Assembly (NCBI RefSeq): GCF_963921235.1
Contig: NC_086110.1
Span: 806,001 to 870,000 of the forward strand
Direction of reading: 5' to 3'
Source of the DNA: Mobula hypostoma
Lineage: Eukaryota
Length of the DNA stretch: 64,000 bases
This document shows positions 7,462-28,676 of this stretch, piece by piece. Made by a program: the position numbers and the translations under genes. The notes under the pieces are model-generated. The model was not told where the DNA came from. It was given only the letters and a program-made list of their open reading frames with translations, and did not search any database. Positions within the stretch are counted from its first letter, which is position 1, and the number at the start of each line of letters is the position of its first letter.

Positions 7462-10261
7462 TTAACATATGATTTAACATCATATTGAATGATCTTCAAA
7501 ACGTCTTCAAACGGAGCAAATCTTTAGTTAACTGTATCCTCTAGAAGTTTTGACATTGTTTCGTTGTTAATGGAATATGCTTAGATGCTTGGGGATCGCT
7601 ATCTTTTTTTTTCGTTCCCGCCGGAAACTTTCCCACCTTTAACTTTATGCTCTCTGGTCAGCATTTTCAGTAAGTTAAAATCGAAGTTCAAAGATCTATT
7701 TGTGGTATAAACCCTTTAGTGCAGGTATAGATAAAGTAAATAAAGGTGGTTACAGGTAAAAGAAGTAAAGAGAATGGTGAGAATGCGAACTGTACCTCAC
7801 GCTATGAGCGTCTCCTGGAGAGTCTTCTAACCTTATTATACCAATGACTGCATATCCCCTGCTGTAACCCTATTACACCCATGACTCTGGGTCCAGGTAC
7901 AGGACAAGCCTATCTTTAAATTTGAAATTGACAGTACTGTTGCTGGTCTCAAAATCAATGTGGAAAAAGGATACAGGAAAAATATCGTGAACCTCTCCTT
8001 AGTTCCTTATTGTCTGTTACCTGTTATCTGTGAATACTGCCATTAATAGAATTAGACTTCACACCTCATGCTGAAGGGGGCAGAAATACAAAATCTGTAC
8101 GTCATCTTTGAAGGGTGCTCGAAAAATTCTCAACAAACGTCTGCAATTATGATATTACTATATGACGTTATGGGCGGTGTACAGTTTCACGTTTTAATGT
8201 ATTACAGAGCAATTTGTAAAGTCACCGGGCCAATTGGCATGGATTTGAAAGCACTGACGGAAAAATTACAAACTGGTCCAAGTTCATGGTGTAAAATCAG
8301 CAAACTGCATGATCACAGAATTTTGTTTTCTGCAGAAGAGAGCACATTGGGGCAGTTTTGTTTAATCTTAGATGACAACATTTGGTGATCTATGGTAATT
8401 TGAACCAAACGCAGAATGTTCCTACGCTTGCATTTTTGTTTCATGAATCAGCCATTTTCAATGCAGACAAATACTGATTTTAATTTAGTCTCGCCACTTT
8501 TGGGTATAGCATATGGGTATGGTGAAGGAATTAGAATAAGGAGTAACTCGAAATTTGATGTAAAGTCGAAAAAGCCAGTTTGTCGTTTCAGTTCTTGCAG
8601 CATTCAGTGTCCCCAGCTCGTTAGGTATTTCATTACTAAAGGAATGCATTCCTTTTGTGCTGTGTTCCTTTAATTGTCCATTCAAAATTGGATCAGCCAT
8701 GATGAAATGGCAGTGCAGGCTAGATGGGCGAAATGGCGTAAAGCGGCACCTATATCTTTTGGTGTCATGCACTATATTTGATATTATTGGAAAAATGACA
8801 GAAAAAAATAATTGTTCCGGTTAATTCAGTCGCAATGGAGGATTGAGATGTTAAAAAATGCTAGTTACAACATCAGAGCAAGAGGAAGGCCGGTCCAAAC
8901 CCATAAGTTAAGGGAGGAAACTGAACAATTGTGGTGACCTCTCCGCAGGTGTCCCGTTAACTGCTTTCTTAATAAATATCCTAGACTGTTGTTTCATGTG
9001 CACTTTTGCATATCCGCACTCCTGTAATTTCGTTCAGAGTACTTTGTCTTCAGGGAATCAGGCCAGTCATTCATGCTAGTCGTGTGTTTTGCCTGCAAAA
9101 CAAAGGTTGGGAAAATAGCTAGAACCTAGCAAATAAATTTAGCTTTCCGATCAAAGAATACTCATAGAAAGTGGTCTTTGATATACTTTTTCGTATATAA
9201 GTATCTCTCCTCGATGCAGATGTTCCTTGCTTTTAACTGACTTGGTCACATTTATCGTAGTATGATGCACCTTATCGTTCAGTGATATCTCCATAAAACG
9301 GAAATTAAAGTTACGCATTACAGTTGCTCGAACACAAACTTATTATTCTTGACGCTCAGGTAACTATCATGAACTATATACTGCAGTATGTACATAGAGG
9401 AAGATTCATGACACGAACTTATCAGTATGACAATAGTTGCATTATCCTTTAGACGATTGATTTGATAAAATTTCTTAAATTGTGCTAAGTGAAATTTTGC
9501 GCACTGGGTCACATAGACTTGCAGATGCCCAATGATTCCACTGTATTTTCCCATTTCGAAATTTAAATAACACAGCAATTGCTGTAACCTGCTTACTATA
9601 TTGGCATGCATTAACAACTGTTCTGGAGTATCAATAAGGAGAATCATAAGGGGATGCAAAGGATTGCCCACACAATCATTTCCTTTCGGGCCACAACGCG
9701 ACAAATAAAGCATACCTTCACAAGGCGTTGCTTCAAGAAGGTGGCATCCATCATTATGGACGCTCGCCATCCATGAAATGTTTTGTATTTTGATTCGGAC
9801 TCTGTGCACCTAAAACACTTTAAATATTCTTAAAGGTCTCTGGTCATTTTGTTTCAGAGAGGTTACTTCCTCTTAAATAGAAATAAAACATTCATAGTTG
9901 TGATTTTTCGAAATTTTGTTATCTGCAGAGAGTAGAGACGATAAGCTGGATTAAATTTAACAATTGGTTAGAGATACATGCAATAATGCACAGTTTAATC
10001 AGTAATATTTGTCTTCTGAATAATTGAGCAAATCATGAAGAAAGAATACATTTTTTAAAAGCATTTTTGGAAAGGTGGGCAAAGCATGATCTAAGAAATA
10101 TATATTGAAGTTGAAGCACCAGTGTTAGAGAGCACACAAAACAATAATGTCTGAAGGGTGAATCAGTCATTAGTTAGGTTATGGTAATATTTAATGAACA
10201 CAGATACAAAAAAAATCACAAGATGTTTAAAAAATATTCGAAAAGTAATACTGGACATTAT

Positions 10262-11650
10262 AGTCCAGTAAGTTTGACGTCGGTAGTGGATAAGTTATTG
10301 AAGGGAGTACTAAGAGACAGAATCTACAGGCAATTGGATGAATAGGGACTTATTAGGAAGAGGCAACATGGCTTTGTGCGTGGTAGGTTATGTTTGTCCA
10401 ATCTGCTGGAGTTTTTCGACGAGGTTACCAGGAAAGTTGATGAAGGGAAGGCAGTGAATATTGTCTTCATGGACTTCAGTAAGGCCGTTGACAAGGTCCC
10501 GCATGGCAGGTTAGTTCGGAAAATTCAGTCGCTAGGTATACATAGAGAGGTGGTAGCTGGATTAGACATCGGTTCAATGGAAAAAGCCAAAGAGTGATAG
10601 TAGAGAATTGATTCTGAGAGTGGAGGCCAGTGATTAGTGGTGTGCCACACGGATCAGTGCTGGGTCCATTGTTATTTGTCATCTATATCAATGATCTGGA
10701 TGATAATGTGGTACATTGGATCAGCAAATTTGCTGATGATACAAAGATTGGAGGTGTAGTGGACAGTGAGGAAGGTTTTCAGAGCCTGCAGAGGGTCTTG
10801 GACCAACTGGAAAAATGGGCTGAAAAATGGCAGATGGGGTTTAATACAGACAAGCGTGAGGTCTGGAAGGACAAACAAAGGTAGAACATACAGGGTAAGT
10901 GGTAAGGCACTGAGGAGTGCAGTAGAACAGAGGGATATGGGAATACAGATACAAAATTCCCTAAAAGTGACGGCACAGGTAAATAAGGTCGTAAAGAGAG
11001 CTTTTTGTACATTGGCCTTTATTAATGAAAGTATTAAGTATAAGAGCTGGTATGTTATTATGAAGTTGCATAACGCATTGGTGAGGCCGAATCTGGAGTA
11101 TTGTGTTCAATATTGGTCACCAAATTACAGGATGGTTATTAGTGAGGTTGAAAGAGTGCAGAGAAGGTTTGCAAGGATGTTGCTGGGATTTGAGAAACTC
11201 AGCTTCAGAGAAAGGTTGAATAGGTTAGGAATTTATTCCCTGGAGTGTAGAAGAATGAGGGGAGATTTGATAGAGTTACATAAAACTATGAAGGGTATAG
11301 ATAGAGTGAATGCAAGCAGACATTTTTTCCACTGAGGCAAGGGGAGAATAAAACAGAGGTCAAGGGTGGGGGGGGGGAGTTTAAAGGAACATTGTGGTTG
11401 TGGTGGTGGGGGGGGCTTCTTCACACAGAGAGTGGTGGGATAATGGAATGAGCTGCCAGACGAGGTAGTAAATGCTATTTTTTTTTTTTTTAGCATTTAG
11501 GAATAAATTGGACAGATACATGGATGGGAGGTGTATGGAGCGATATGGTCCGTTTGCAGGTCAGTGGGAGTAGACAGAAAATAGTTCAGCACAGCCAAGG
11601 ACCAAAAGACCAGTTTCCGTGCTGTAGTTTTTATATGGTTTCGATGGTTT
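10262..11650 (+). mobile_element. 5'-truncated CR1 LINE (RT domain to 3' tail)
   Basis: GRLCLSNLLEFF, FMDFSKAVDKVPH, GVPHGSVLGP, KFADDTKIGG, RPNLEYCVQYWSP; frameshifted. Confidence 0.92.
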
Positions 11651-12516
11651 CCATGTCCTGCACAAAATTACGTAAAGAAAGATGTTCAACCACGGACATA
11701 AGAGAAATTATAAGATTCAAAGAGAACGTTTATAAGCCTCTCAGAAATAATGAAGGGTTGCAGAATATAGGCATTGATAATTCAGAAAAAAGAACATGAA
11801 AATTGATATGCTTATTAGAGTATGAAAACAATCGTGCAAGGAATGTAACATTTTCATTTGAAAATTGTGCAAATTTATAAAGAGTGCAGCAAATATGGTA
11901 ACTTTACATTCATAAAGGTAGTAAATATACTTGGCCAAATAACATGCAGGGGAAGTTCGATCACTGCATTCATTTAGTCTTCGCAAAGCAGCACAAAAGA
12001 AGCAGCTGCGACATGAGTATGTAAGGAGGAAAGGAATGAAGGAAATCAGTTTTCGGAAAGACATAAAAATTCGAAATTAATGGGGATAAAAGGGTAACAA
12101 ATTACCAGGACCTGACAATTGCATCCCAAAACGAAGTTCCCAAATGGAAACAGAAATATGGATTTATTGGTCGTAATGTCTCAAATTCTTCAGAGTCTGG
12201 AGACGAGCACGTGATTGACGAGCGAACGAGAATTCTATTACAAAAAAAAAAGAAAACATGCATGCAAGCTCAAAGACAGCAGTCAACATAGTGGGAAGAA
12301 TCTCTTATTAAAGTTTCAACTGAAAAGTTTTATTGGGATTCAGACAAAAATAAATAATGGGTAGCAAATTCGTTCTCAGTCGTCTGGAGCTTAGACAGAA
12401 GAAGGGTAGGGAGGTTATATGAGCTGGAGAGGAGAAAAAAAAACAAACTGCGTAATGCGGGCAAGTAGATCTAGAACATACAAGCATCGTGATTCAATTG
12501 GAAGAGGAAGAGACGC

Positions 12517-12557
<41 letters not shown>

Positions 12558-12558
12558 G
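12517..12558. repeat. (GTT)n microsatellite
   Basis: Direct reading, about 14 units. Confidence 0.97.
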
Positions 12559-12749
12559 ATTTTTGCCGCACAGCCGGTGTGTACAGTCCAGTTGAGATCT
12601 TCAGAGATGTATATACCGAGGAACTTGAAGCTATTCACCCTGTCAGCTGTTAATCGAGCTTAGCCTGTCTCTGTTCCTCCGGTAATCCACGATCAGATCT
12701 TTTGTTTTATATATTGCTATATGTATTTATTGTTGACCGACTGTGGCAG

Positions 12750-12839
12750 TTACATAGATCTGATGGGAATATTGGCGTATATTTCAAAGTTCAAATATAT
12801 GCAGTTATGTACCGGTGTGTAAAAATATTGAAAATCTAA
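12750..12839 (-). CDS. Candidate terminal cytoplasmic exon 'b' of the IgSF receptor: LDFQYFYTPVHNCIYLNFEIYANIPIRSM* (needs phase-0 entry)
   Basis: Acceptor ccctttttgcag at 12840-41; open to TAA 12750-52; AATAAA at 12726-31 about 20 nt after the stop; same reading frame and stop position as paralogous exon 'a'. Confidence 0.5.
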   Translation of the reverse strand, partial: LDFQYFYTPVHNCIYLNFEIYANIPIRSM

Positions 12840-12911
12840 CTGCAAAAAGGGCACACGAGACAGATTAGAAAGAGGGACAGAATTGATTGAGTTTTCAGAT
12901 ATTAGAGTCAC

Positions 12912-13190
12912 AAAATACTCTGCAGATGCTGCGTTCAAAGCAACACTCACAAGACGCTGGAGGAACTCAGCAGGTTGGGCAGCATCCGTGGGAACGATCA
13001 GTCAACGTTTCGGGCCGGAACCCTTCATCAGGACTGAAGAGGGAAGGGGCAGAGGCCGTATAAAGAAGGTGGAAGGAGGGTGGGAAGGAGAAGGCTGGTA
13101 GGTTCCAGGTGAATAACCAGTAAGGGGAACGATAAATGGGTGGGAAAGGGGAAGCAGGGAGGTGATAGGCAGGAAAAGTGAAGAAGGAAT
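12912..13190 (-). mobile_element. Penelope-like element terminal repeat fragment
   Basis: ctgcagatgctg...ggaactcagcagg...gcagcatc...tttcgggcc...ccttcatcaggact, same family as 29775-30101, which adjoins a GIY-YIG remnant. Confidence 0.82.
12999..13036 (-). ncRNA. Minimal type I hammerhead ribozyme (Penelope-associated)
   Basis: RNA CAGUC-CUGAUGA-AGGGUUCCGGCCC-GAAA-CG-UU/GACUG: perfect 5-bp stem I, catalytic core, stem II GGG/CCC, palindromic ACGU stem III, GUU cleavage triplet. Confidence 0.82.
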
Positions 13191-13213
13191 ATATTGTTGA
13201 CCGACTGTGGCAG

Positions 13214-13308
13214 TTACAGAGATATAATGGCAAGTTTGGCGTATATTTCAAAGGCCACGTGTAAGCAATCATGCCCTGTTGTGTAAAAATAAGAACTTAC
13301 ATAACTAA
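13214..13308 (-). CDS. Candidate cytoplasmic exon 'a' of the IgSF receptor: (V)SYVSSYFYTTGHDCLHVAFEIYAKLAIISL*
   Basis: Acceptor ccctttttgcag at 13309-10; phase 1 matches the TM exon donor; 95 nt open to TAA; contains YxxL (YAKL). Confidence 0.6.
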
Positions 13309-14203
13309 CTGCAAAAAGGGAAGGCTAGTCAGTTTAGAAAGAGGGACAACATTGCTTGAGGCTTCAGATATCAAAGATCAGAAACTATTAACCAAATATT
13401 CAAAATGTGCCAGACAGAAGTGAATGCTATTTTTTTCTGGTACAAATTGTGTCAGTGGTCAGACAATTTAATTACTAATTGCAGAGAATGAAATATTTCG
13501 ACATGTCAAGAGTGACAGAAGAAAAAAAGCAGGAAAGGGACGCAGGAAATAATAATCAGTCAAAATAATTTTCCACGATAGAGGGTAAATGTCGGGTTGT
13601 TTGTGTCCACTATTTGTTTAATTGCATTTATTTATAACTATATGTGGCTACATATCTATGTCGAGAGTCTGCCTTTCTGTCTCGCTTTGTTTCTATCTAT
13701 TTACCAATCTACCAAAGCAAAAACAGAACAGAACCTACCTGTCCTTCAGAATGCACTGCGTTGTCTTCCGAATCTCTTGTACATAATCATGATCATAATT
13801 CCAAATTATCCAATTAATTATTCGCTTTTCAGCATGAAATAATATTTCTGATGGGCAATATTTACATTAATATTTGAAGCAATATTGTAGTACGATATTT
13901 GCTGAATACTGCCATATGTTAAAAACAGAAATTGCTCTTCGATTTGTAATTATGGCGTCTAACATTACCCTCAGCATTTAGCACAGCGTATAATACCCCG
14001 GCCATGCCTCACTTCTCGCTCACTGCTCTCGACAGCATGACAAAATTAAAGGATGGTATTTATATACTGCATTAACTTCACGAACATTTTACTCAGTGTA
14101 GTAAAGGAAGAGGAAGTGGTTTTGACAAGTTTTTTCAACCGAGTATTCCTGGCAGAACACTTTATCTTATACGCTCTCCTTACACCCCCACCCCACCCCC
14201 TTT

Positions 14204-14255
14204 ATCTCTCTCTCTCTCTCTCTCTCTAACACACACACACACACACACACACACA
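14204..14255. repeat. Compound (CT)n(CA)n microsatellite
   Basis: Direct reading. Confidence 0.95.
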
Positions 14256-14309
14256 GACTAACATGCCATAACACGGCGCTGAATTTATGACTATAGGTTT
14301 CAAAATTCA

Positions 14310-14770
14310 GGATTCACGATTCAGGAACGTTTACTGTCATTTCCAGTACACACGTGTAATGGAAAACGGAACAATTGTTACTGTGGCTTCGATGCAGCAC
14401 AAAAAATGCAATAAGCTAAAGAACACTATAATAATATAACAACACCATAACTATAAGTTCATAAGATAGATTGATTGTATGTCGATAGAAAATCGCTTGG
14501 CACAGGACTGTCTGTACATAAGGTGACTAACAGGAAAACATAAAGGTTTCAAAGATTTCAAAGATATATTTAATGTCAGAGAAATATATGCAATATAGTT
14601 TGCAATAAAGTTCTGACGGTTGGAGGTTTGAAGAGGTGCATTAGTGGATGAAGGTGCCGGTCCGGTCTCGCTATTTGCAGAAAGCAACTGCTTTTGAAAA
14701 TGGTGGTGTTAACGTGGATGCTATGCAGACTCTTCCCCATGGCAGTGGGACAAACAATCCATAGGCCGAA
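14310..14770 (-). mobile_element. Old LINE/SINE 3' remnant (Rex1/Babar-like)
   Basis: tttactgtcatttccagtaca and ggaaagcaactgc...ctcttccccatggcag resemble the 3' ends of the other Rex1/Babar copies; heavily diverged. Confidence 0.4.
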
Positions 14771-15166
14771 TGGGTGAAATCCCTCATTATGTTACTGGCT
14801 CCTTACGGCACATTTCTGTAAATAATGTATATCCGGAACCACATGGTGTCAAAACTTGTTCAAATATATCCTGTTAACGAAGTGCCAGATGTAATACATT
14901 TATTCCGGATATATTCAAAGCAGCCAAAAGGGAAGTGATGAGACTGCACGGCAATATATATATATATATTTTTTTTTACCACGCAGGCCAATTATCTAAT
15001 GATATGTTCTGTATATTTTCCTTGCAATATGGGATGTAATCAAGGACTGTGCTAACCTTGCATCAACCTTGGCATTAATTTCATCTAACTTTAACCGAAG
15101 TGCACTTAGCTCACTGAAGAAAACCAAAGCTTGCAATTAACTTGTTATAATGTCATGATTCCTTAC

Positions 15167-15277
15167 CTCTGTATTTTCTTACAAACTTTTGTATTATGAT
15201 TCTTATAAGCAATAGAATGTACAATCCACCGCCAATCGACCGACAAATCTGAACATACCATTGTACATGGTGAATTT
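15167..15277 (-). CDS. Transmembrane exon of the IgSF receptor: EIHHVQWYVQICRSIGGGLYILLLIRIIIQKFVRKYR
   Basis: Acceptor tttccttgcag, donor G|gtaagg, 111 nt, phase 1-1; hydrophobic stretch with Arg and Cys followed by a basic stop-transfer KFVRKYR. Confidence 0.8.
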
Positions 15278-15439
15278 CTGCAAGGAAATGTAACGAATTA
15301 TTGTAGAACAACTTTAATGTGATTGAAAAGTATAATGTCACACTTCTGATCTTTTATTTGGGTATGTGCCTATACGGAAGTTGCTATTATGTCTACAGTT
15401 GTTAGATATTTTACTCGGCATTTCCTCAGACTAAATACC

Positions 15440-15710
15440 TGTTCCCCAGGATGAGGAGTTCCAAATCTCTGGTGCATCACTTTAGAACGATAGAAGGAAG
15501 ATTTAAAATCAAATCTGAATTACTTTTTTTTTTCACACGGAGGGTGGTAGATATATTGAATGATCTGTTAGAGTAGGTAGCTGAGGCAGGTAAAATAGGT
15601 ACACAGAGTGGATGGGACAGCGGGCAACAAAAACAGAAATTCGGAATTAGCTCAGTAATCGACATGGAATGGTTAGGCAGACGTCGTGCATCGGTAGTCT
15701 ATAGCCCTAT
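15440..15710 (+). mobile_element. Decayed CR1 3' fragment in intron
   Basis: ttttttcacacggagggtggtagatatattgaatgatctg matches the FFTQRVV..WN.L region. Confidence 0.65.
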
Positions 15711-15879
15711 GACTGTACAAATAGATTTTTGGTAGGTATCCTCGGGGCATTCATCTTAACCAAGATCATATCCAGTAATTAAATCAGCTTTGATTGCGGC
15801 ATTTGCATGAAAACATAGAGGAAAATGTGTAGCTTACGTCAAATTCAATCAGCGAGATCTGGCTGGACAACTCAAGTGG

Positions 15880-16078
15880 TGTCAAAACAGCATGTCCATA
15901 ACTTACTAACTTTCACAGCGCATCTATGAAATGTATGAGGAACAATATGACCCGGAGGAAACACACGCGGCCACGCGTCAAACGCGGAAACTCGTGACAG
16001 TGGCGGGAATTGATCTGTAGTATTACAGCTGGCGCTCTAAAAGTGTTACGCTTGCCGTAACGCTATCGTGACACCCCT
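15880..16078 (-). mobile_element. tRNA-derived SINE remnant (HE1-like)
   Basis: cccggaggaaacacacgcggccacg...aaactc...gacagtggcgggaattga...gctggcgct...gttacgct resembles the shark/ray HE1 SINE body, recalled from memory. Confidence 0.6.
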
Positions 16079-16294
16079 TTCAGTGCACCACAAATTTATT
16101 GTTTCGTCAAATTAAGATTTTAACTGATTTTGCCTCATCGCTTTCGAATTACAGCCATCCTTTCCAATACAGGCGCAAACATTTTTTAAGATTCTGCCTA
16201 TTACTAACAAGTAGTGCGTCAATGTGTTCCTAATATTCGAAAAAAAAAATTGTTTCAGGAACGTGGCTAATGGTTAATAGAATTCTATATTTAC

Positions 16295-16603
16295 CTCCTG
16301 TAGTCGTTGACATAAATTGGAACTCCTTTGCCGTTTTGATTGTAGGATGACTTGCCTGACAAGTGTAAATAGTCCCGCTCTTGACAGGTTGTACCTCGAC
16401 CAGAATGCTGGTAACTTCATAGAGACCATTTGCGTTTAGCACTTTTATTGTAGTTATACCGTTCCCGACGGTCAGACCATTCTTGCACCAAGTAATATTT
16501 ATCTCACCAGGGTAGAATTCAGGAGTTGTGCATGCAATTGCAAGGGCGATAGATCCATTCTGTTTGGTTTCATTGTAAGTAATTCGTAAGGGGGTCGGTG
16601 GAA
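16295..16603 (-). CDS. Ig C1-set exon of the IgSF receptor (copy A)
   Basis: Acceptor ttgttctgcag, donor G|gtaaat, 309 nt, phase 1-1. VPPTP...IACTTPEFYPGEINITWCKNG...NANGLYEVTSIL...IYTCQASH has the C1 hallmarks CxxxxFYPxxI, WxxNG, YxCxxxH. Confidence 0.93.
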
Positions 16604-17821
16604 CTGCAGAACAAGTTAAATGTTTATTCATAACAGTAATATTTAACCAAAATTGCATAAAATATTTAAATCTATTCTCGGTAAAAGCAAATTGGCATCA
16701 TATACATTTCATCAACTCTGCCACTAATAACATTACTTGGATTCCTGCTTAGTATCTGCGCAGGAAATAAATATTGTTTCCTGATGGGTGGTGAGAAAAT
16801 TGTAAATTAATCAGATTATTTCATTTTAATTTCGATGCCCTGAAATGCTCACATAGATAATAATGGTACCTGTAGGCGGGATCACAAACTTAAAAGAGTT
16901 GGTGGTTCGGATGCTGCAGGGTTATATCAAAGAAGCTGTAACATTGTTAAGAGTAAGGTGGAATTGCCAAATAGGAGGTTTAAGTAATGAAGTAAATGTT
17001 GGAAATGTCCGAGGAAGAATCAGTTTCGATACAATATTTGATGGCATTTGAAAAATGCAATTCTCAGCACGCAGCTAATGGTATTTGGGAGGTTGGGACT
17101 TCTTTTTTACGGTGTTGCATGTATGTTTCAGGAGCAAAATAAATATATGAAGAACGTAAAACTAAACGATGCCCGGCAGATAAGAAAGTCGTAGATTTTC
17201 AAGCACTAGAATGAAGCAGAAATTGTCGTCATTTGAATCCAACATCTAATGTGAGCTGCGAAAAAAAAATTACTCAACATTAACTACTTCAGTTGGTAAA
17301 ACGAAACACAAGCGTCGAACTGTCGGTTACACTGCTCTCTGAATAACCAAGAACACCGAATCATTTTTTGACGGTGTTTCTTTGGAATTTCTTTTAAAAG
17401 TTTGGTGTAAGACATGTTCATGATTTTATTACACCACCATTATTCCAGAAACGAAGAATCAAAAAAGTGAGTTCAAATTTAATTGACCTAAATATTCATG
17501 ATTCGCTTCAGAAGCAAATTTGAATGCGAATTACATTCAGTCATGTATTTAAAATAATCCATAGCGAACCCTATATTGCATTCCTAGCAATTTTGAATTC
17601 ACAATTCAGCTTCCAGCTCTCAGATCAAACACACTGCAGTTACAGAAGAGTGAAATAATAATAAAAAAAATATCCAGAAACACTACAAATGCCAGACAAC
17701 TTATGTGGGAAGAGAATCCAGACCTTTTTTTGTGCTTAAAATGTATGTCGTAATTAAAGCAGAAATCGAAGTGAATTTTCTTTACTTTATTTTGGTATCA
17801 ACTTTAATAACTTCTGCTTAC

Positions 17822-18142
17822 CATGGACCACGAGCTTTGACCCAGTTCCATTTATCAGTGGATTATCTCGACGTTTCAGCCCACAATAATATACTCCCGT
17901 GTCTGCGGCACTGACGTTCATGAGCTGAAAGGTAGCCTCCCCTTTACTCAAAGTAGGGACATATTTCCTGCTGTCCAACCAAGTCTGCAGGAAATTGTTT
18001 CCCCCTAGTTTCCACCAGAAAATATTTAGATCTGAGTTATCTTGGAGGAGTGGGAAAGCACAGTAGAAAGTCACGCTTCCACCAATGATCACGTTGGTGC
18101 TGACAGGAAGTTGCAAAACCTTGTTCGGTACTTCTGCAACGG
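17822..18142 (-). CDS. Ig V-set exon with germline-joined J-like strand (copy A); NKp30/antigen-receptor-like
   Basis: Acceptor tttaccacacag, donor G|gtaagc, 321 nt, phase 1-1. GGSVTFYC, IFWWK, ATFQLMNVSAADTGVYYC, INGTGSKLVV (GxG.KL.V). Confidence 0.93.
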
Positions 18143-18491
18143 CTGTGTGGTAAAGAATGGAAATTAATACATATAGCCGGAGATACACCGTATGTGAATG
18201 AACAATTTAATCTTCAAGCATAAGTACGTGAGAATAGAACTCTTATTTTTTGCACATCATAATATTAACTTATTTGCAAGTTACCGCGTGCTAACAGCCA
18301 AACCACCTATTTGTTTCTAATACTCATTTCAGATTCGTGCCGCTAATTGTATGGCGTCGAATGAAGTGATCGGCAATGAAAATAAATATTTCAAACATAG
18401 ACAATATTAAAGTGATTTTAAGTTTCCAGCGCTGGATAACTTTTCTGTTTACTTTTTGTCCACAAGAGAGATAGGAAAACATACACTTTAC

Positions 18492-18537
18492 CTGGATAAA
18501 TAATATTGAAGATCACTAATAACAATGGAAGATGCAT
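18492..18537 (-). CDS. Leader (signal peptide) exon copy A: MHLPLLLVIFNIIYP
   Basis: aaaATG start, 46 nt, donor G|gtaaag phase 1; joins the V exon to give MHLPLLLVIFNIIYPAVAEVPNK. Confidence 0.85.
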
Positions 18538-19003
18538 TTTTGAAACAGAACTGACAAAATTCGACGTCTTGACACAGCCGTCTGGAATGTTACGACGCAT
18601 GACGCTTAAAGTGTTTTCAACAGTGCGATTGAGTGGCGTGAGGTTAGCGTGAGCATAAAACCAATTGACTCCGGAGTCTTTCGTCCTACGTTTAAGGACG
18701 AAAAAACACACCTTAATAGCAGTTAGTGATACGATTAATGCAGCTTGGTAGTTTAGCCAACGAGAGTCCCTCTGACATTGCCATCATCAGAGGCAATCCA
18801 CAGTATGGTTTCATTCAACGTCATAAGTATTCTTATTTCGGTCGGAAGGGCAGGCATTTTGTCGTCAAACCTATAAGCACAGGGCATCAGATTTGCGACT
18901 TTAATCTGATAGGCTAGAATGGAGCAAAGGTCCGACGATCACTGCAGGATAAACCAAGATATTTTGAAATGATTAACAAAACATACGCTGATCAAGTTGA
19001 AAA

Positions 19004-19029
19004 CCGGAAGAGGAAAGTTGCTTTAAATA
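19004..19029. promoter_or_regulatory. Tandem ETS/PU.1-like sites (CCGGAAGAGGAAAG) ~470 bp upstream of leader A
   Basis: Motif visible; the paralogous site at ~29153-29166 reads CCAGAAGAGGAAAG. Function is inference. Confidence 0.35.
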
Positions 19030-19739
19030 GAGGTTTCGCATTCGGTGAGTTCCGTCCATTAGAGCCCACATAATAAGCATAAATGGTAAAAACATAACAA
19101 AAATACTCATAATAGATATCCATATTAGTTTAATGATGTGAGAGTAGCAATATCATCAATATATTTTGTTCCCTGTTGAATCTATATATTGGGTTGAAGT
19201 GTTGTTGTATCCTATGTTGCCTGTGCACAGACAATCTATTTCAGTGAATACTCAAGAAACTATCCGTAATTCATGCAAATAACTTTTAATCAACACAAGT
19301 CCTGTGGTTGATTTTGCTGTCGGATTTTCAGACCAGCAAATGTCGAGTCACGTATTTCTGTATCAGTTATTTCAACTCTCTTCAACTTCTGTGTATATTG
19401 TCAGCAAATATGTGAAAGCTTGCAAAGTATTAAATCATAGAGGGATCTGAATGCCGTTATACATTAATCACTAAAGGCTACTGGCTACGTGACGCAAGTA
19501 ATTAAAATGACAATGCAAGCTTTTAGCTTTTTGCTGGGCGGATTTTGTACAATGTTAGGGAAGTAATGTCTCAATTATAAGCAACATCTCTGGTGTCAGG
19601 TGCACGGAATACCTGTTTTTTTTTTAATCAAGTACGAGTTGAAATCGAGCCAGAGAAGGTTTAATGGACATACCTCATATGCCTAGCTGTGATACAAACG
19701 AAGTGCAACGTGTAGGAATGTGACCACAGAAATTTAAAG

Positions 19740-21400
19740 TCGTGAAAGGGAACTTGGAGGAAATATGTAAGATCATGCTGTATCATTTTACACAGGAGAC
19801 TGAGACAAAGTCTGTAGAAGTGAAGCAAAGTGGATCAACTTCGTGGGCCCCATGCCGATTACAAGGGAGGAGTTGCTTTCTATCCTGAGGCAAATCACGC
19901 TGGATAAGTTCTAGGGGCCTGACAAGGTGTTCCCTCTAACACTATGAGAGGTAAGTGCATACATTTTCAGGGCTCTAACAGAGATATTTAAATCATTCTT
20001 CGAGGCTCTGGAGGATTGGTGGATAACCCATGCAGTTCCACCGTATAAAAAGGTTGTAAACATGGGCCCGTCAGTCTGGCATCAGTTGTTGGAAAGATAC
20101 TGGAAGATATTCTAAGTCACAGGATATATAAAGATATGGTTAGACACGGGCAGATTAAGGATCTACATCATCTGGGAAAATTGACTGAAAGATGTCAGAT
20201 GTAATTTAACGCAGACAAATGTGAGAATTTTCACTTCGTTAGGATCAACCATGATAGGTCTTACACAGTGAAAATTAGGCGCTGGGGAGTGTGGTAGGAC
20301 AAATGGGTATGGGAATACAGGTACATAATTTGTTGACATGACAATACGAGTAGACAAGGCCGTAAAGAAAGTTTTTGGCACGTGAGCCTTCGTAAATCAA
20401 AGTATCGAGTACAGGAGGTTGGGAAATGTTGAGGTTGTATAATACATTGATATGGCCTAATTTGGAGTATTGTGTGCAGTTTTGGTCATTTACCTACAAG
20501 AAAAATAACTTTCTACAAGAGAAAAATTACAACGATATGGCCAGATCTGGAGCACCTGAGTTATATGGAAAGACTGAATAGTGTCACAACTACGGACTCG
20601 GCAGCGCAACAAATTCGGCCACTGCGCTCGTGAATATGCCCTTCAGATAATTATCATTTCATTATTGCGGTCTTTAACTCCGTGGTTTTTGCTGTAACGC
20701 TTGCCGAGACTTGAGCAAAGTACAGCAACGTTACGCTTCCGACTTGGATTTGGCCTGGCCCGATAAAGCGTACTATCGAGTGGACTGGGGCCGAAGAACA
20801 GCATACAAAAGTATCTGTTTTGTATTTAGATCTTCACTCAAGCTGTGGTGTTTAGTATCTAGTTTTCCGTTTGAGAGTTTTAGTCTACAGCCCTGTTTGG
20901 CCTAGTGTTTGTTTTCTTTTCCTTAAAATACTGCCCGCTTCAGTGTCCTTCTCCCTGCACTTGAGCCGTATCCAAACATAGTGACAGAATAGGTTCGGAC
21001 TGTCTTCCTGAGAAAGCGAAAAATTGAGAGGATATTTGATAAAGGTATACAAAATTACGCGGGCTAAAGACAAGGTAAATGGAAGCTGCCTTTTTCCACT
21101 GTGGCACTATAACCACAGGCCATTGGTTAAGAGTGAAAAGTAAAAGGTTTAAGGAGAACATGACGGGAAACGTCTTCACACAGCGGGTCGCTGGAGTGTG
21201 GAATGAGCTCTACGCACAAATGGTGCAGGTGAGCTCGAATTCAAAGTTTAGGAGAAATTTAGACTGGTAGATCGGTAGTGGGGGCCTGAAGAGCTATGGC
21301 CCTCTGCAGGACAATGGGAGTAGGCAATCTCAGCGGTTTCGGCATCGACAAGATGTGCCAAAGGGTCTGCTTCGGTGCTGTACTTCTCAATAGCTCTGAT
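19740..21400 (+). mobile_element. Old degraded CR1 (predates duplication; paralog ~33430-35480)
   Basis: Remnants of RPVSL, NADKCE, EYCVQFW, ERLNRLGL, VFTQRVAGVWNEL; present in both units. Confidence 0.8.
20582..20986. mobile_element. Solo LTR (405 bp), TGTCAC...GTGACA ends, 6-bp TSD GAATAG
   Basis: gaatag|tgtcac...gtgaca|gaatag; interrupts the CR1 ERLNRLGL codons. Confidence 0.85.
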
Positions 21401-22942
21401 TCTATCCTGACAGAGTGAAAACGGCAGATTAGGAGTGAAAATCTTTTTAAGAAGTTTTTTGCGTTGAACAAGGAACGGTGACCATATTTTTTTTTCTTTC
21501 CTTTCAAAGATCAAAGAATAGTACAGCACAGTACAGGCCCTTCAGCGCACAATGTTGTGACGACCCTTGAACCCTGCCGCCCATATAACACCTCCACGTT
21601 AAATTCCTCCATATACCTGTTTCGATTATACCTGATTTCGTTTTGAAATTATTGTTTTCTCAAAGGATGAAGGAAGGACAGCAAGTGAATATAGCTATTT
21701 TATTTTAAAGTAGATCGATTGTTAGAGATTCTAATTCCGAGTTAAGATTGGATTTATAACTTAATCACAATTACGAAACGAGCATCATCGCCTCGCCAAT
21801 CTGCTTTTCCAAGAAGAGGACCAGAACTTTGTCCTGGAAGCTCCCGTGCCTCAAAGATGCTAAAAGATATACAAGAAGAAGTCAAGGTTTTATGCTCCGG
21901 GTCTCAGCAAGATCAAGTATATCAAACATATCAAAAGGTAGATGGCAGACTAAGAATTGTCCGCCGATCCCTCTGATTCACCAACTCAGGGCTAACAAAC
22001 CTGGATGGGAAAAAAAAAAGAAACTGCTCTGAAAGCAGCAGTGAAGAATCATTGTAAATGGGTGTGTGACGGTATTCCTGAGTCTCCACCCAGGATTTGC
22101 ATGACTGACAGGAAACCGAGAAGAAGCTACTGTCAGGATGAAAATACTGTGAATGCCCCCCAGACATGGTGGACCCTCATTGCTACACTAAATGCCAACG
22201 ATGGATTGGCCAGACGAGGAAGATGATGGAGTCCAGTAAACATACAGTACGGACACCAGTCCACTGGATAATGCATGTCATTACATCAAATCTAGAACTG
22301 ATTTATATTCAATCAGTTCTATTCTCTTCACGTTGACATCCATTCTGCCAGATTCGAATAATCAATTACACACTGTTGTAATGTTAAAGTAGCCAAATAC
22401 CAAGCTTTTGGGATGTGAGTGAATATCGTAGCATCTAGTCTCTAGTTTAATGACACGAATACGAAGGCAAGGTATGCTTGCCAACTCACACAGTTACTGA
22501 ATGAAAGCACCGAACAGGCCCAGGCACCGTTGCATAGAACCGTTGGAACTGCAGAACAAGTTAAATATTTATTCATACCAGATATTTTTATCCAAAATTG
22601 CAGAATAATTTAAATCTTTCTTCGGTAAAAGCAAATTGACATTGTATACATTTCATCGACTGTGACATCAATAACATTACTGGACTTTCTGTTTACTATC
22701 TGCACAGGACATAAACATTGTTTGCCTATAGGTGGTGAGAAAATTATAAATTAATCACATTATTTCATTTTAATTTCGATGCCGTGAAATGCTCACATAG
22801 ATAATAATGGTACCTATAGGCGGGATCACAAACTTAAAAGAGTTGCTGGTTCCGATGCTGCAAGGTTACATCAAAGAAGCTGTAGCATTTTTAAGAGGAA
22901 GGCTTGGATTGCCAAATGGCAGGTTTAAGTAATGAAGTAAAT

Positions 22943-25900
22943 AGAAACATAGAAACATAGAAAATAGGTGCAGGAGTAGGCCATTCGGCCCTTCGAGCCT
23001 GCACCGCCATTTATTATGATCATGGCTGATCATCCAACTCAGAACCCAGCCTTCCCTCCATACCCCCTGACCCCTGTAGCCACAAGGGCCATATCTAACT
23101 TCCTTTTAAACATAGCTAATGAACTGGCCTCAACAGTTTGCTGTGGCAGAGAATTCCACAGATTCACCACTCTCTGTGTGAAGAAGTTTTTCCTAACCTC
23201 GGTCCTAAAAGGCTTCCCCTCTATCCTCAAACTGTGACCCCTCGTTCTAGACCTCCCCAACATCGGGAACAATCTTCCTGCATCTAGCCTGTCCAATCCC
23301 TTTAGGATCTTATACGTTTCAATCAGATCCCCCCTCAATCTTCTAAATTCCAACGAGTACAAGCCCAGTTCATCCAGTCTTTCTTCATATGAAAGACCTG
23401 CCATCCCAGGAATCAATCTGGTGAACCTTCTTTGTACTCCCTCTATGGCAAAGATGTCTTTCCTCAGATTAGGGGACCAAAACTGCACACAATACTCCAG
23501 GTGTGGTCTCACCAAGGCCTTGTACAACTGCAGTAGTACCTCCCTGCTCCTGTACTCGAATCCTCTCGCTATAAATGCCAGCATACCGTTCGCCTTTTTC
23601 ACCGCCTGCTGTACCTGCATGCCCACTTTCAATGACTGGTGTATAATGACACCCAGGTCTCGTTGCACCTCCCCTTTTCCTAATCGGCCACCATTCAGAT
23701 AATAATCTGTTTTCCTATTTTTGCCACCAAAGTGGATAACTTCACATTTATCCACATTAAATTGCATCTGCCATGAGTTTGCCCACTCACCCAACCTATC
23801 CAAGTCACCCTGCATCCTCTTAGCATCCTCCTCACTGCTAACACTGCCACCCAGCTTCGTGTCATCCGCAAACTTGGAGATGCTGCATTTAATTCCCTCA
23901 TCCAAGTCATTAATATATATTGTAAACAACTGGGGTCCTAGCACTGAGCCTTGCGGTACCCCACTAGTCACCGCCTGCCATTCTGAAAAGGTCCCGTTTA
24001 TTCCCACTCTTTGCTTCCTGTCTGCTAACCAATTCTCCACCCACACCAATACCTTACCCCCAATACCGTGTGCTTTAAGTTTGCACACTAATCTCCTATG
24101 TGGGACCTTGTCGAAAGCCTTTTGAAAATCCAAATATACCACATCCACTGGTTCTCCCCTATCCACTCTACTAGTTACATCCTCAAAAAATTCTATGAGA
24201 TTCGTCAGACATGATTTTCCTTTCACAAATCCATGCTGACTTTGTCCGATCATTTCACCGCTTTCCAAATGTGCTGTTATCACATCCTTGATAACTGACT
24301 CCAGCAGTTTCCCCACCACCGACGTTAGGCTAACCGGCCTATAATTCCCCGGTTTCTCTCTCCCTCCTTTTTTAAAAAGTGGGGTTACATTAGCCACCCT
24401 CCAATCCTCAGGAACTAGTCCAGAATCTAACGAGTTTTGAAAAATTATCACTAATGCATCCACTATTTCTTGGGCCACTTCCTTAAGCACTCTGGGATGC
24501 AGACCATCTGGCCCTGGGGATTTATCTGCCTTCAATCCCTTCAATTTACCTAACACCACTTCCCTACTAACATGTATTTCGCTCAGTTCCTCCATCTCAC
24601 TGGACCCTCTGTCCCTTACTATTTCTGGAAGATTATTTATGTCCTCCTTAGTGAAGACAGAACCAAAGTAATTATTCAATTGGTCTGCCATGTCCTTGCT
24701 CCCCATAATCAATTCACCTGTTTCTGTTTGCAGGGGACCTACATTTGTCTTTATCAGTCTTTTCCTTTTTACATATCTATAAAAGCTTTTACAGTCCGTT
24801 TTTATGTTCTCTGCCAGTTTTCTCTCATAATCTTTTTTCCCCTTCCTAATTAAGCCCTTTGTCCTCCTCTGCTGAACTCTGAATTTCTCCCAGTCCTCAG
24901 GTGAGCCACTTTCTCTGGCTAATTTGTATGCTACTTCTTTGGAATTGATACTATCCCTAATTTCTCTTGTCAGCCACGGGTGCACTACCTTCCTTGATTT
25001 ATTCTTTTGCCAAACTGGGATGAACAATTGTTGTAGTTCATCCATGCAACCTTTAAATGCCTGCCATTGCATATCCACCGTCAATCCTTGAAGTGTCATT
25101 TGCCAGTCTATCTTAGCTAATTCATGTCTCATACCTTCAAAGTTACCCCTCTTTAAGTTCAGAACCTTTGTTTCTGAATTAACTACGTCACTCTCCATGT
25201 TAATGAAGAATTCCACCATATTATGGTCACTCTTACCCAAGGGGCCTCTCACGACAAGATCGCTAATTAACCCTTCCTCATTGCTCAAAACCCAGTCCAG
25301 AATAGCCTGCTCTCTAGTCGGTTCCTCGACATGTTGGTTCAAAAAACCATCCCGCATACATTCCAAGAAATCCTCTTCCTCAGCACCTTTACCAATTTGG
25401 TTCACCCAGTCTACATGTAGATTGAAGTCACCCATTATAACTGCTGTTCCTTTATTGCACACATTTCTAATTTCCTGTTTAATACCATCTCCGACCTCAC
25501 TACTACTGTTAGGTGGCCTGTACACAACTCCCACCAGCGTCTTCTGCCCCTTAGTGTTACGCAGCTCTACCCATATCGATTCCACATCTTCCCGGCTTAT
25601 GTCCTTCCTTTCTATTGCGTTAATCTCTTTTTTAACCAGCAACGCCACCCCACCTCCCCTTCCTTCGTGTCTATCCCTCCTGAATATTGAATATCCCTGA
25701 ACGTTGAGCTCCCATCCCTGGTCACCCTGGAGCCATGTCTCTGTGATCCCAACTATATCATAATCATTAATAACAATCTGCACTTTCAATTCATCCACCT
25801 TATTACGAATGCTCCTTGCATTGACACATAAAGCCTTCAGGCACTCTTTTACAACTCTCTTAGCCCTTTTTAATGCTTGCCCTGGATTTGTCGGCCTGCC

Positions 25901-26708
25901 ACTTTTACTTTTCCCCTTTGTACTTTTTGCTTCTACGCTCACTTTACACCCCTCTGTCTCTCTGCACTGGTTCCCATCCCTCTGTTGTGAACTAACCTCC
26001 TCACACCTAGCCGCTTTAATTTGATTCCCACCCCCCAACCATTCTAGTTTAAAGTCTCCTCAGTAGCCCCCGCTAATCTCCCTGCCAGGATATTGGTCCC
26101 CCGAGGATTTAAGTGTAACTCGTCCTTTTTGTACAGGTCACACCTGCGCCAAAAGAGGTCCCAATGATCCAAAAACTTGAATCCCTGCCCCCTGCTCCAA
26201 TCCCTCAGCCACGCATTTATCCTCCACCTCATCGCATTCCTACTCTCACTGTCGCGTGGCACAGGCAGTAATCCCGAGATTACTACCTTTGCGGTCCTTT
26301 TTCTCAACTCCCTTCCTAGCTCCCTATATTCTTCTTTCAGGACCTCATCCCTTTTCCTACCTATGTCATTGGTACCTATATGTACCAGGACCTCTGGCTC
26401 TTCACCCTCCCACTTCAGGATATCTTGGACACGATCAGAAATATCCCGGACCCTGGCACCAGGGAGGCAAACTACCATCCGAGTCTCTGGACTGCGTCCA
26501 CAGAATCGCCTATCTGACCCCCTTACTATCGAGTCCCCTATCACAACTGCCCTCCTCTTCCTTGCCCTACCCTTCTGAGCTACAGGGCCAGATTCTGTGC
26601 CGGAGGCAGGGCCACTGTCGCTTCCCCCGGGTAAGCTGTCCCCCCCAACAGTACTCAAACAGGAGTACCTGTTGTTAAGGGGCACAGCCGCCGGGGTACT
26701 CCCCATCA
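22943..26708 (-). mobile_element. Young CR1 LINE, 5'-truncated in ORF1, ORF2 intact
   Basis: (ATAGAAAC)n tail; empty site gaagtaaatgttgg in unit A, with aaat on both flanks in unit B. Confidence 0.97.
23039..26038 (-). CDS. CR1 ORF2: APE endonuclease + reverse transcriptase, 999 aa open
   Basis: VNARSIRNK, GITETWL, MGDFN, LDWVL, SDH (APE); NYRPVSLTS, YLDFQKAFDKVPH, GVPQGSVLGP, KFADD (RT). True start codon uncertain. Confidence 0.95.
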   Translation of the reverse strand: MGGGNQIKAARCEEVSSQQRDGNQCRETEGCKVSVEAKSTKGKSKSGRPTNPGQALKRAKRVVKECLKALCVNARSIRNKVDELKVQIVINDYDIVGITETWLQGDQGWELNVQGYSIFRRDRHEGRGGGVALLVKKEINAIERKDISREDVESIWVELRNTKGQKTLVGVVYRPPNSSSEVGDGIKQEIRNVCNKGTAVIMGDFNLHVDWVNQIGKGAEEEDFLECMRDGFLNQHVEEPTREQAILDWVLSNEEGLISDLVVRGPLGKSDHNMVEFFINMESDVVNSETKVLNLKRGNFEGMRHELAKIDWQMTLQGLTVDMQWQAFKGCMDELQQLFIPVWQKNKSRKVVHPWLTREIRDSINSKEVAYKLARESGSPEDWEKFRVQQRRTKGLIRKGKKDYERKLAENIKTDCKSFYRYVKRKRLIKTNVGPLQTETGELIMGSKDMADQLNNYFGSVFTKEDINNLPEIVRDRGSSEMEELSEIHVSREVVLGKLKGLKADKSPGPDGLHPRVLKEVAQEIVDALVIIFQNSLDSGLVPEDWRVANVTPLFKKGGREKPGNYRPVSLTSVVGKLLESVIKDVITAHLESGEMIGQSQHGFVKGKSCLTNLIEFFEDVTSRVDRGEPVDVVYLDFQKAFDKVPHRRLVCKLKAHGIGGKVLVWVENWLADRKQRVGINGTFSEWQAVTSGVPQGSVLGPQLFTIYINDLDEGIKCSISKFADDTKLGGSVSSEEDAKRMQGDLDRLGEWANSWQMQFNVDKCEVIHFGGKNRKTDYYLNGGRLGKGEVQRDLGVIIHQSLKVGMQVQQAVKKANGMLAFIARGFEYRSREVLLQLYKALVRPHLEYCVQFWSPNLRKDIFAIEGVQRRFTRLIPGMAGLSYEERLDELGLYSLEFRRLRGDLIETYKILKGLDRLDAGRLFPMLGRSRTRGHSLRIEGKPFRTEVRKNFFTQRVVNLWNSLPQQTVEASSLAMFKRKLDMALVATGVRGYGGKAGF

Positions 26709-26709
26709 A
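26044..26709 (-). CDS. CR1 ORF1 C-terminal part (SGNH/GDSL esterase-like), 5'-truncated
   Basis: VIGDSIVRG, CLPGARVRDI, VHIGTND, DELHLN motifs. Confidence 0.88.
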   Translation of the reverse strand: MMGSTPAAVPLNNRYSCLSTVGGDSLPGGSDSGPASGTESGPVAQKGRARKRRAVVIGDSIVRGSDRRFCGRSPETRMVVCLPGARVRDISDRVQDILKWEGEEPEVLVHIGTNDIGRKRDEVLKEEYRELGRELRKRTAKVVISGLLPVPRDSESRNAMRWRINAWLRDWSRGQGFKFLDHWDLFWRRCDLYKKDELHLNPRGTNILAGRLAGATEETLN

Positions 26710-27379
26710 AATGTTGGAAATGTCCGTGGAAGAATCCGTTTAGATACAATATTTGATAGCATTAGAAAAATACAATTCTCATCACACAGCTAAAGGTATT
26801 TGGGAGGTTGGGAGTTTTTTTTAAGGTGTTGCAGATATGTTTCAGGAGGAAAACTATAATATTAAGAAGGAAAATCTAAACGATGCCCGGCAAATAAGAA
26901 AGTCGTAGATTTTGAAGCACTAGAATGAAGCAGAAATTGTCGTCATTTGAATCCAACATCTAATGTGAGATGCGAAAAAAAAAGATTACTCAACATTAAT
27001 TACTTCAGTTGGTAAAACAAAACACAAGCATCGAACTGTCGGTTACACTGCTCTCTTACTAAGGAAGAACACCGAATCATCTTTTGACTGTGTTTCTTTG
27101 GAATTTCTGTTAAAGGTTTGGTGAAAGTCATGCTCTTGATTTTATTACACCACCATTATTCCATAGACTAAGAATCAAAAAAGTGAGATTAAATTTGAAT
27201 GACAAAAATATTCATGATTCGATTCAGAAACAAATTTGAATGCGAATAATTTTCAGTCATGTCCTTAAATGAAGCCATAGCGAACCCTATATTGTACTTG
27301 TAGCAATTTTGAATTCACAATTCAGCTTCCAACTCTCAGATCAAAAACACAGCATTTACAGAAGAGTGAAACAATAAAC

Positions 27380-27790
27380 TATAGAAAAACCATAGAAAGA
27401 GCTACAGCACAGAAACAGGCCTTTTGGCCCTTCTTGGCTGTGCCGAACCATTTTCTGCCTTGTGCCACTGACCTGCACATGGACCATATCCCTCCTTACA
27501 ACTCCCATCCATGTATCTGTCCAATTTATTCTTAAATGTTAAAAAAAAAACTAATTTACCACCTCGTCTGGCAGCTCATTCCATACATCCACCACTCTCT
27601 GTGTGAAGAACCGCCCCCCATGTTCCCTTTACACGTTTCCTCCCTCACCCTTAACCCATGTCCTCTGATTTTCTTTTCTCTCCCTTTGCCTCAGTGGAAA
27701 AAGCCTGCTTGCATTCACTTTATCTATACCCATCATAAATTTATATACCTCCATCAAATCTCCCCTCATTCTTCTACGCTCCAGGGAATA
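27380..27790 (-). mobile_element. CR1 3' fragment (unit B only)
   Basis: YSLERRRMRGDLMEVYK; CCATAG tail; absent at the paralogous site ~17660. Confidence 0.9.
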
Positions 27791-27951
27791 AAAAAAAATA
27801 AAATCCGGAAACACTTAAGAAGACAGACAATTTATGTGGGAATAGAATCCAGATTATTTTTTGGCATAAAATTTAGGTCGTTATTATAAGAGAAATCGAA
27901 GTGAACTTTCTTTACTTTATTTCGGTATAAACTTTAATAATTTCTTCTTAC

Positions 27952-28272
27952 CATGGACCAGGAGTTTTGACCCAGTTCCATTTATTATTGAATGATCTCG
28001 ACGTTTCACCCCACAATAATTTACTCCCGTGTCTGCGACACTGACGTTTATAAGCTGAAAAGAAGCCTTCCCGTTACTCAAAGTAGGGACATATTTCCTG
28101 CTGTCCAGCCAAGTCTGCAGAAAATTGTTTCCCCCTAGTTTCCACCAGACAACATTTAGATCTGAGTTATCTTGGAGGAGTGGGAGAGCGCGGTAGAAAG
28201 TGACGCTTCCACCAATGATCACGTTTAAGCTGACAGGGAGTTGCAAAACCTTGTTCGGTACTTCTGTCACGG
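27952..28272 (-). pseudogene. V exon copy B: open frame but first Cys to Arg (FYR) and YYC to NYC
   Basis: Same 321-nt exon and splice sites as copy A (acceptor 28273-74, donor gtaaga); loss of the B-strand cysteine implies no canonical disulfide. Confidence 0.85.
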
Positions 28273-28633
28273 CTGTGTGGTAAAGAATGGAAATTAATAC
28301 ATATAGCCGTAGATACACAGCATGTGAATGAACAATTTCATCTTCAAGCATAGATACGTGAGAATACAACTTTTATTTTTTGCACATCATAATTTTAACT
28401 TATTTTACCAGTTACCACGTGCTAACAGCCACAACACCTACTTGTTTCTAATAATCATTTCATGTTCGGGGCGTTAATTGTATTGTGTCGAATGACCCTA
28501 ATCCTAATGAAGTGATCGGCAATGAACTACATATTTCAAACATATACAATATTAAAATGGTTTTAAGTTTCCAGCGCTGGATTACTTACTGTTTACTTTT
28601 TCCACAAGAGAGATAGGGAAAAGTACACTTTAC

Positions 28634-28676
28634 CTGGATAAATAATATTGAAGATCACTAACAAGAAAAGATTCAT
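28634..28676 (-). CDS. Leader exon copy B: MNLFLLVIFNIIYP
   Basis: ATG at 28676-74, 43 nt, donor G|gtaaag; in frame, one codon shorter than copy A. Confidence 0.75.

Follow-up and report, generated by a model that had tools for sequence, protein, structure and literature searches.

The 64-kb window analysed here (64,000 nucleotides of the lesser devil ray, Mobula hypostoma) harbours on its minus strand a gene for a type I membrane protein composed of a leader, a V-set domain, a C1-set domain, a transmembrane (TM) helix and a short cytoplasmic tail. The locus is a real, transcribed, low-expressed functional gene; taken jointly with the proposal developed below, namely that its product represents an activating-type form within a family of paired receptors in cartilaginous fish, this conclusion is assigned a probability of about 0.55.

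Gene model and transcript structure

The exons of the gene are bordered by GT/AG and share phase 1 (Table 1). An exhaustive HMMER search with the V exon yields a 100 % match (P0001) to the RefSeq protein XP_062923424.1 of M. hypostoma (287 aa, ending ...KYRGKES), which is named "SIRP-alpha-like" and assigned to a chromosome of 80.6 Mb. This entry corresponds to the same four-exon model and starts at an in-frame ATG at 18600 (18598-18600), 21 codons 5' of MHLPLL, the protein comprising 266 aa from MHLPLL and 287 aa from the upstream ATG. The latter is shared by the duplicate block and the stingray model described below. Since RefSeq already predicts XP_062923424.1, the gene is not hidden among transposable elements (TEs), as the original prediction had put it.

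Evidence from RNA was drawn from public runs of the same species; the gene's RNA is present in one of three runs (termed X1), the two sister runs being without it. A single 736-nt X1 contig contains, at exactly the predicted positions, the three joints 18492>18142, 17822>16603 and 16295>15277, with 0 mismatches across the V and C1 exons, and X1 depth is 0 over the true introns. V exon A is recognized as V-set (Pfam E 2.3e-8) and contains, besides the pair of canonical cysteines, the motifs WWK and YYC and a J-like G strand (NGTGSKLVV), while the second domain exon is recognized as C1-set (Pfam E 5.8e-12) and holds C...W...YTCxxSH. Thus, Pfam, motifs and RNA agree with the predicted V domain that carries a J-like GTGSKLVV strand in the same exon and is followed by a C1-set domain. 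As V and J adjoin within this single exon and the RNA does not differ from the germline, the V domain does not rearrange. The predicted ectodomain consists of two beta-sandwich domains modelled with confidence (AlphaFold pLDDT 89.4, pTM 0.80), the canonical immunoglobulin (Ig) residues and sequons are all retained, and the 266-codon open reading frame (ORF) is intact.

The TM helix (VQICRSIGGGLYILLLIRIII) contains two Arg and one Cys and is followed by a tyrosine-free tail of 12 aa (QKFVRKYRGKES). The first TM Arg lies in the outer third and the second near the inner end of the helix. A TM with Arg and Cys had been foreseen from the sequence; the codons are present in the genome, and both Arg codons fall within the RNA contig 15200-15279 (0 mismatches). 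The stop codon TGA at 15155-15153 is reached by read-through of the GT at 15166. Contigs 15040-15196 and 14781-15054 are uninterrupted and the donor of the TM exon is crossed without a break; because transcripts run past this donor to a stop four codons on, the protein ends ...RKYRGKES.

The initially proposed gene of five exons and ~290 aa holds for four of them (leader, V, C1 and TM), whereas the fifth exon, meant to supply a YxxL tail, is unused in the RNA. In that model, the TM exon is spliced from 15167 to 13308, yielding a 293-aa protein with a YAKL-bearing tail; its exons are phase-compatible, an AG acceptor and an open frame are present, and the candidate tail exon 13308-13214 has a degenerate duplicate at 12840-12750. 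However, no joint leaving 15167 is seen in X1 RNA, which leaves 15167>13308 without support, contigs cross the donor, and RNA depth in X1 is 0 over 13301-13700 and 12501-12900, the regions of the candidate tail exons. Moreover, a real intron (13738-12235) spans and removes both candidate exons, RefSeq ends with GKES, and the true tail exon of the closest orthologue maps elsewhere, to 14884-14787. A YxxL tail generated by splicing to 13308 is thus hardly credible.

Instead, the transcript continues from the TM exon into a long 3' untranslated region (3'UTR). The X1 contigs 14781-15054 and 13739-14135 have a depth of 4-7, similar to that of the coding contig. This part of the 3'UTR (13739..15152) contains fragments of TEs and the relic of a dead tail exon, in addition to a (GT)n(GA)n microsatellite.

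Table 1. Positions of the features of the devil-ray gene and of its upstream duplicate in the window
Feature	Positions	Strand	Details and evidence
Leader exon A	18492..18537	-	46 nt, MHLPLLLVIFNIIYP plus 1 nt, phase 1
V exon A	17822..18142	-	321 nt; Pfam V-set; RNA contig colinear with genome, 0 mismatches
C1-set exon	16295..16603	-	309 nt; Pfam C1-set; RNA joints on both sides
Last coding part (stalk, TM, tail)	15153..15277	-	125 nt from 15277 to stop; RNA contigs; RefSeq C-terminus identical
3'UTR continuing from TM exon	13739..15152	-	X1 contigs 14781-15054 and 13739-14135; continuity over 14136-14780 inferred
Relic of ancestral cytoplasmic exon	14787..14884	-	ALR, stop, QDIFEQVLTPCGSGYTLFTEMCRKEPVT, stop; tblastn of P0162 (stingray) tail: 68 % identity, E 5e-11
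Spliced 3'UTR intron, GT..AG	12235..13738	-	joint 12234/13739 in a 1121-nt X1 contig, 0 mismatches
Downstream 3'UTR exon	11511..12234	-	same 1121-nt X1 contig, which reaches to 11511
Leader exon B	28634..28676	-	MNLFLLVIFNIIYP; alignment of the two cassettes; B-specific RNA contig
V exon B	27952..28272	-	84 % aa identity to V exon A

Several further observations concern the surroundings of these exons. Only this gene and TEs are found within the window. A start at the RefSeq ATG would place an unusually long n-region ahead of the signal-peptide core. A repeat resembling a short interspersed nuclear element (12897-13290), located inside the 3'UTR intron, reaches a summed RNA depth of about 1e5 in X1 and is high in all three runs, with many variant copies. 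Other highly expressed repeat fragments of the 3'UTR region (14276-14669 and 10101-11700) have depths in the thousands and break transcript assembly. A 170-nt X1 contig (12243-12412, depth 7.9) lies just inside the 3'UTR intron beside its acceptor; it may stem from the use of another acceptor, from retention of the intron or from a transcript of its own.

A V(J)-C1 receptor family of cartilaginous fish

The search with the V exon yields 71 cluster representatives at E<=1e-10, and V and C1 are both present in 63 stored matches, a few of which are additional members of clusters already represented. All members looked up belong to sharks, rays, skates or chimaeras, i.e., to Heterodontus, Heptranchias, Carcharodon, Cetorhinus, Mustelus, Scyliorhinus, Chiloscyllium, Hemiscyllium, Leucoraja, Hemitrygon, Hypanus, Mobula and Callorhinchus. 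With phmmer, E-values of the V domain to members of nine species range from 1e-30 to 1e-10. A profile of a 43-sequence V-C1 alignment retrieves, at E<=1e-15, only cartilaginous-fish proteins (matches with E 1e-60 to 1e-85). Outside the family, the V domain comes nearest to turtle and lizard proteins with multiple Ig domains, to a "SIRP-like" protein of a frog and to NITR13 of carp. Rather than the singular pre-rearrangement antigen-receptor chain of the original prediction, the gene is one of dozens of cartilaginous-fish paralogues. The automatic RefSeq names conflict within the family (SIRP-alpha-like, tapasin-related-like, NCR3 ligand 1-like, Ig lambda-like, CD276, MHC class II beta-like), and no description of it was found in the literature searched.

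From the alignment consensus with its invariant columns and, for the anchor, from the survey described below, family members are characterized by (i) a V domain with the pattern WWK.GE...DSGVYYC...NGTGS.L.V in a single exon, (ii) a C1 domain that starts with VPPTPL and continues with FYP...TWYK.G...GLYE.SS...YTC.VSH, its C, W, C and H being invariant, and (iii) a single TM combined either with a tail carrying immunoreceptor tyrosine-based inhibitory (ITIM) or switch (ITSM) type motifs or with a short tail and a basic TM residue. The devil-ray gene displays the V and C1 patterns as well as the anchor trait, the latter in the form of its two TM Arg and 12-aa tail. A survey of TMs and tails distinguishes two classes: one with an uncharged TM and a long tail containing LxYAxL and TEYAx[VIL] motifs, and one with short tails, several of whose members (P0003, P0005, P0041, P0063, P0094, P0110, P0163 and P0204) have an Arg within the N-terminal third of their TM. 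The devil-ray chromosome that bears the present gene also encodes paralogues of the inhibitory type (P0203, P0201 and P0206) together with the Arg-TM short form P0204. A TM Cys adjoining a motif of small residues (GC.GGGL) is frequent among family members. To judge from the sequences, this pattern is that of a paired activating/inhibitory receptor family.

No single tetrapod family is singled out by sequence or structure searches, identity to Ig light chains, to B7 proteins and to SIRP being in each case about 20 %. With Foldseek, the highest-ranking matches in PDB are antibody kappa chains (E about 5e-15, identity about 22 %), while against Swiss-Prot the order is PD-L1, CD276, Ig-lambda, CADMs, B7H6, T-cell receptor (TCR) beta, butyrophilins and SIRP-alpha, all of them spanning no more than one order of magnitude, with identities of 13-23 %. 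In PDB sequence searches with single domains and family profiles, Ig light-chain variable (VL) and TCR V domains lead among the matches listed for the V exon, and Ig constant domains and UrIg2 (9dmx) among those listed for the C1 exon; these searches are dominated by multi-domain Ig proteins, such that SIRP, NKp30, tapasin and TCR could not be ranked.

Among tetrapod receptors, the SIRP family shares a C1-set domain placed after a V domain whose G strand is J-like, as well as paired inhibitory members with multi-tyrosine ITIM tails and activating members with a short tail and basic TM. Accordingly, the gene might be a true orthologue or co-orthologue of tetrapod SIRP, specifically the equivalent of SIRP-beta, instead of belonging to a lineage-specific family. 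The RefSeq naming, four-tyrosine tails in paralogues such as P0004, and rat SIRP-alpha as the best Swiss-Prot superposition (TM-score 0.76, root-mean-square deviation 3.7) agree with such a descent. However, identity amounts to about 16-20 %, SIRP ranks by E-value below PD-L1, CD276, Ig-lambda and CADMs in Foldseek, and no SIRP V domain appears among the top PDB sequence matches listed. The SIRP ectodomain is V-C1-C1, whereas the devil-ray RNA joins a single C1 directly to the TM, and SIRP-beta has a mid-TM Lys in contrast to the Arg in the outer TM third. SIRP orthology is considered unlikely, and membership in a cartilaginous-fish family is retained here.

NKp30 (NCR3), an activating receptor, likewise combines a VJ-type V domain encoded in the germline, whose G strand contains N-G-T, with a TM Arg and a short tail. 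Human NKp30 has a single Ig domain and no C1, whereas in the devil-ray gene a C1-set exon is spliced in between V and TM. No family member is named NCR3 by any source, several being named after the NCR3 ligand B7H6. The J-like strand N-G-T-G-S occurs family-wide, and in the family alignment its GxG bulge overlaps a conserved N-glycosylation sequon; GNGT of NKp30 represents a similar overlap of bulge and sequon. Teleost NITRs are also non-rearranging and of the VJ type, and their multigene family includes inhibitory members with ITIM as well as activating ones with a charged TM; their second domain is of the I-type or missing, and is not known to be C1. Ig light and TCR chains share the V(J)-C1 architecture, whereas the devil-ray gene is without recombination signal sequence or separate J segment, has its own TM anchor and belongs to a multigene paired-receptor setting.

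PRARP is laid out as V-C1-TM. It is cited as a non-rearranging VJ gene of non-mammalian vertebrates (PMC10751288, PMC11599192). UrIg and UrIg2 are non-rearranging antigen-receptor-like genes of elasmobranchs with a single-exon VJ, a split leader and C1-type domains; UrIg is a secreted protein with three C domains, the number of C domains in UrIg2 is 9-11, and each is described as a single gene (PMC12227049). The cartilaginous-fish single-exon VJ, the split leader and the subsequent C1-type domain are thus shared with the devil-ray gene, but the latter has one C1 exon instead of three or more C domains, and UrIg/UrIg2 are not described as a paired family with ITIM tails and charged TMs. In its working logic, the devil-ray receptor would most resemble SIRP-beta or NKp30, i.e., a ligand-binding V domain on a short-tailed anchor with basic TM, accompanied by ITIM-tailed sisters.

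Stingray orthologue and duplicated upstream block

The closest relative of the devil-ray gene is P0162 of the stingray Hemitrygon akajei (83 % identity over V-C1). Its TM is uncharged (ICGSIGGGLFILLVLIIII) as compared to that of the devil ray (ICRSIGGGLYILLLIRIII), each of the two devil-ray TM Arg replacing a stingray Gly or Ile. The TM exon of P0162 is spliced to an exon encoding ALCEQGVFGQVSTPFGSRYTVYTEMCRKEPVTS, which contains a YxxM motif, and the tail ends with RYTVYTEMCRKEPVTS. The devil-ray transcript instead reads past the TM exon to the stop. A relic of this YxxM tail exon is found within the devil-ray 3'UTR (Table 1): its acceptor position reads GG instead of AG, TAA interrupts the frame at 14876-14874, and the YxxM Tyr is replaced by Phe. 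Comparison of the two genes indicates that, relative to its stingray orthologue, the devil-ray gene has gained two TM arginines and lost the YxxM tail exon. Because the devil ray keeps this dead relic and the stingray TM is uncharged, the Arg-bearing, tail-less state was reached recently. The TM and tail contrast between the stingray orthologue and the devil-ray copy is new here.

The promoter-leader-intron-V-intron block (16596-22537) is tandemly duplicated upstream as 22541-40169, this copy being broken up and stretched by TE insertions. The boundary of the duplication lies 8 nt inside the C1 exon. In V exon B, the first canonical Cys is changed to Arg (TFYRALP) and YYC to NYC; relative to V exon A, the ratio of nonsynonymous to synonymous substitution rates (dN/dS) is 0.54, and divergence amounts to 8.4 % in the exon versus 10.1 % in the intron. 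X1 contains no contig resembling V exon B and no variant letters over V exon A at a 90 % threshold, reads not having been aligned directly to 27.9-28.7 kb. V exon B is probably a skipped pseudo-exon.

Leader B appears to be transcribed. The last 28 nt of leader A are joined to V exon A in the RNA, and the same 28 nt are identical in leader B; the sole X1 contig over positions which distinguish the leaders (130 nt) carries the changes of leader B (ATGAAT, a 3-nt deletion and others). In the simplest reading, transcripts would start at leader B, skip V exon B and join V exon A. The duplicated block also houses an apparently intact long interspersed nuclear element (23039-26709, minus strand) with a 999-aa ORF for endonuclease and reverse transcriptase domains, preceded by a 221-aa GDSL-esterase ORF.

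Proposed receptor function and its implications

The gene is best read as an activating-type member of the cartilaginous-fish paired V(J)-C1 receptor family, its 266-aa type I product being coupled to an adaptor via the TM Arg. The predicted product comprises a signal peptide, a V domain of the VJ type joined in the germline, a single C1-set domain, a short stalk, an Arg-bearing TM and a 12-residue tail without tyrosine; its inhibitory-type paralogues share this ectodomain but combine it with an uncharged TM and ITIM/ITSM-like tails. The V domain may bind a ligand. [quoted passage not shown] Since both the family and the chromosome contain TM-Arg short-tailed paralogues side by side with ITIM-tailed ones, it is reasonable to suppose an activating, adaptor-coupled role, and coupling to a signalling adaptor is plausible.

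Several points weigh against this assignment. Expression is low (depth about 5) and confined to a single run of three, the RNA is ambiguous between leader/promoter A and B, and the duplicated V cassette is decaying. The mean Kyte-Doolittle value of the 21-residue TM helix is 1.94 compared to about 2.5-3 in most paralogues, and the two Arg that lower its hydrophobicity could reflect decay. A spliced intron far 3' of the stop would normally make an mRNA the target of nonsense-mediated decay. FcRgamma was not found in sharks in a 2014 survey (PMC4016189). The data show the structure and splicing of the gene, its domains, its family and its TM and tail differences from the orthologue; the adaptor coupling, the activating sign, the ligand and the cell type are inferred.

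Some of these points would equally be expected of a gene that is still transcribed but turning into a pseudogene, with a dead tail exon, destabilising TM Arg, a duplicated V domain without disulphide and an mRNA subject to decay, such that the product has little or no function. In line with this, the relic has a stop, a lost acceptor and a Tyr-to-Phe change, the two TM Arg are absent from the orthologue, and V exon B has lost Cys23; low TM hydropathy, the 3'UTR intron and low depth in one of three runs fit as well. Conversely, the coding frame is intact with every canonical Ig residue and sequon kept, and splicing is accurate. Moreover, many intact paralogues of different species likewise combine a short tail with an Arg at the same TM position, a recurrence that speaks for selection and not for chance. 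Decay is therefore regarded as rather unlikely.

The product could also act as a tail-less partner or decoy, pairing via the TM Cys/Gly-rich motif or the V-C1 face with an ITIM-bearing paralogue or with itself, similar to an antigen-receptor heterodimer, and modulating ligand binding or serving as a sink without any ITAM adaptor. This would agree with the TM Cys and its GC.GGGL-type neighbourhood common in the family, with an ectodomain closest to antibody light chains in the Foldseek search of PDB, and with the dimeric state of UrIg and UrIg2, whose non-rearranging VJ is likewise combined with C1-type domains (PMC12227049). Nevertheless, a membrane-proximal extracellular Cys of the kind linking TCR and Ig chains is missing, and the gain of charged TM residues is better explained by adaptor pairing, rendering a partner or decoy role quite improbable.

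One may tentatively speculate that a paired receptor switched its signalling mode since the split of devil ray and stingray, via the gain of Arg, the loss of the tail exon (with acceptor, frame and tyrosine all hit) and the duplication of promoter, leader and V. The locus could then represent a dated natural example of an adaptor-coupled activating receptor arising from a self-signalling one, in a V(J)-C1 family that is perhaps the cartilaginous-fish counterpart of the SIRP/antigen-receptor-precursor lineage. The family is large and inconsistently named in RefSeq, and the devil-ray copy adds an RNA-backed member of the putative activating type. In this family, the stingray comparison would provide a concrete recent change of signalling mode, with TM arginines gained and a YxxM tail exon killed. 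More generally, the non-rearranging VJ-C1 genes of cartilaginous fish bear on the origin of antigen receptors (cf. UrIg/UrIg2 and NCR3 in PMC12227049).

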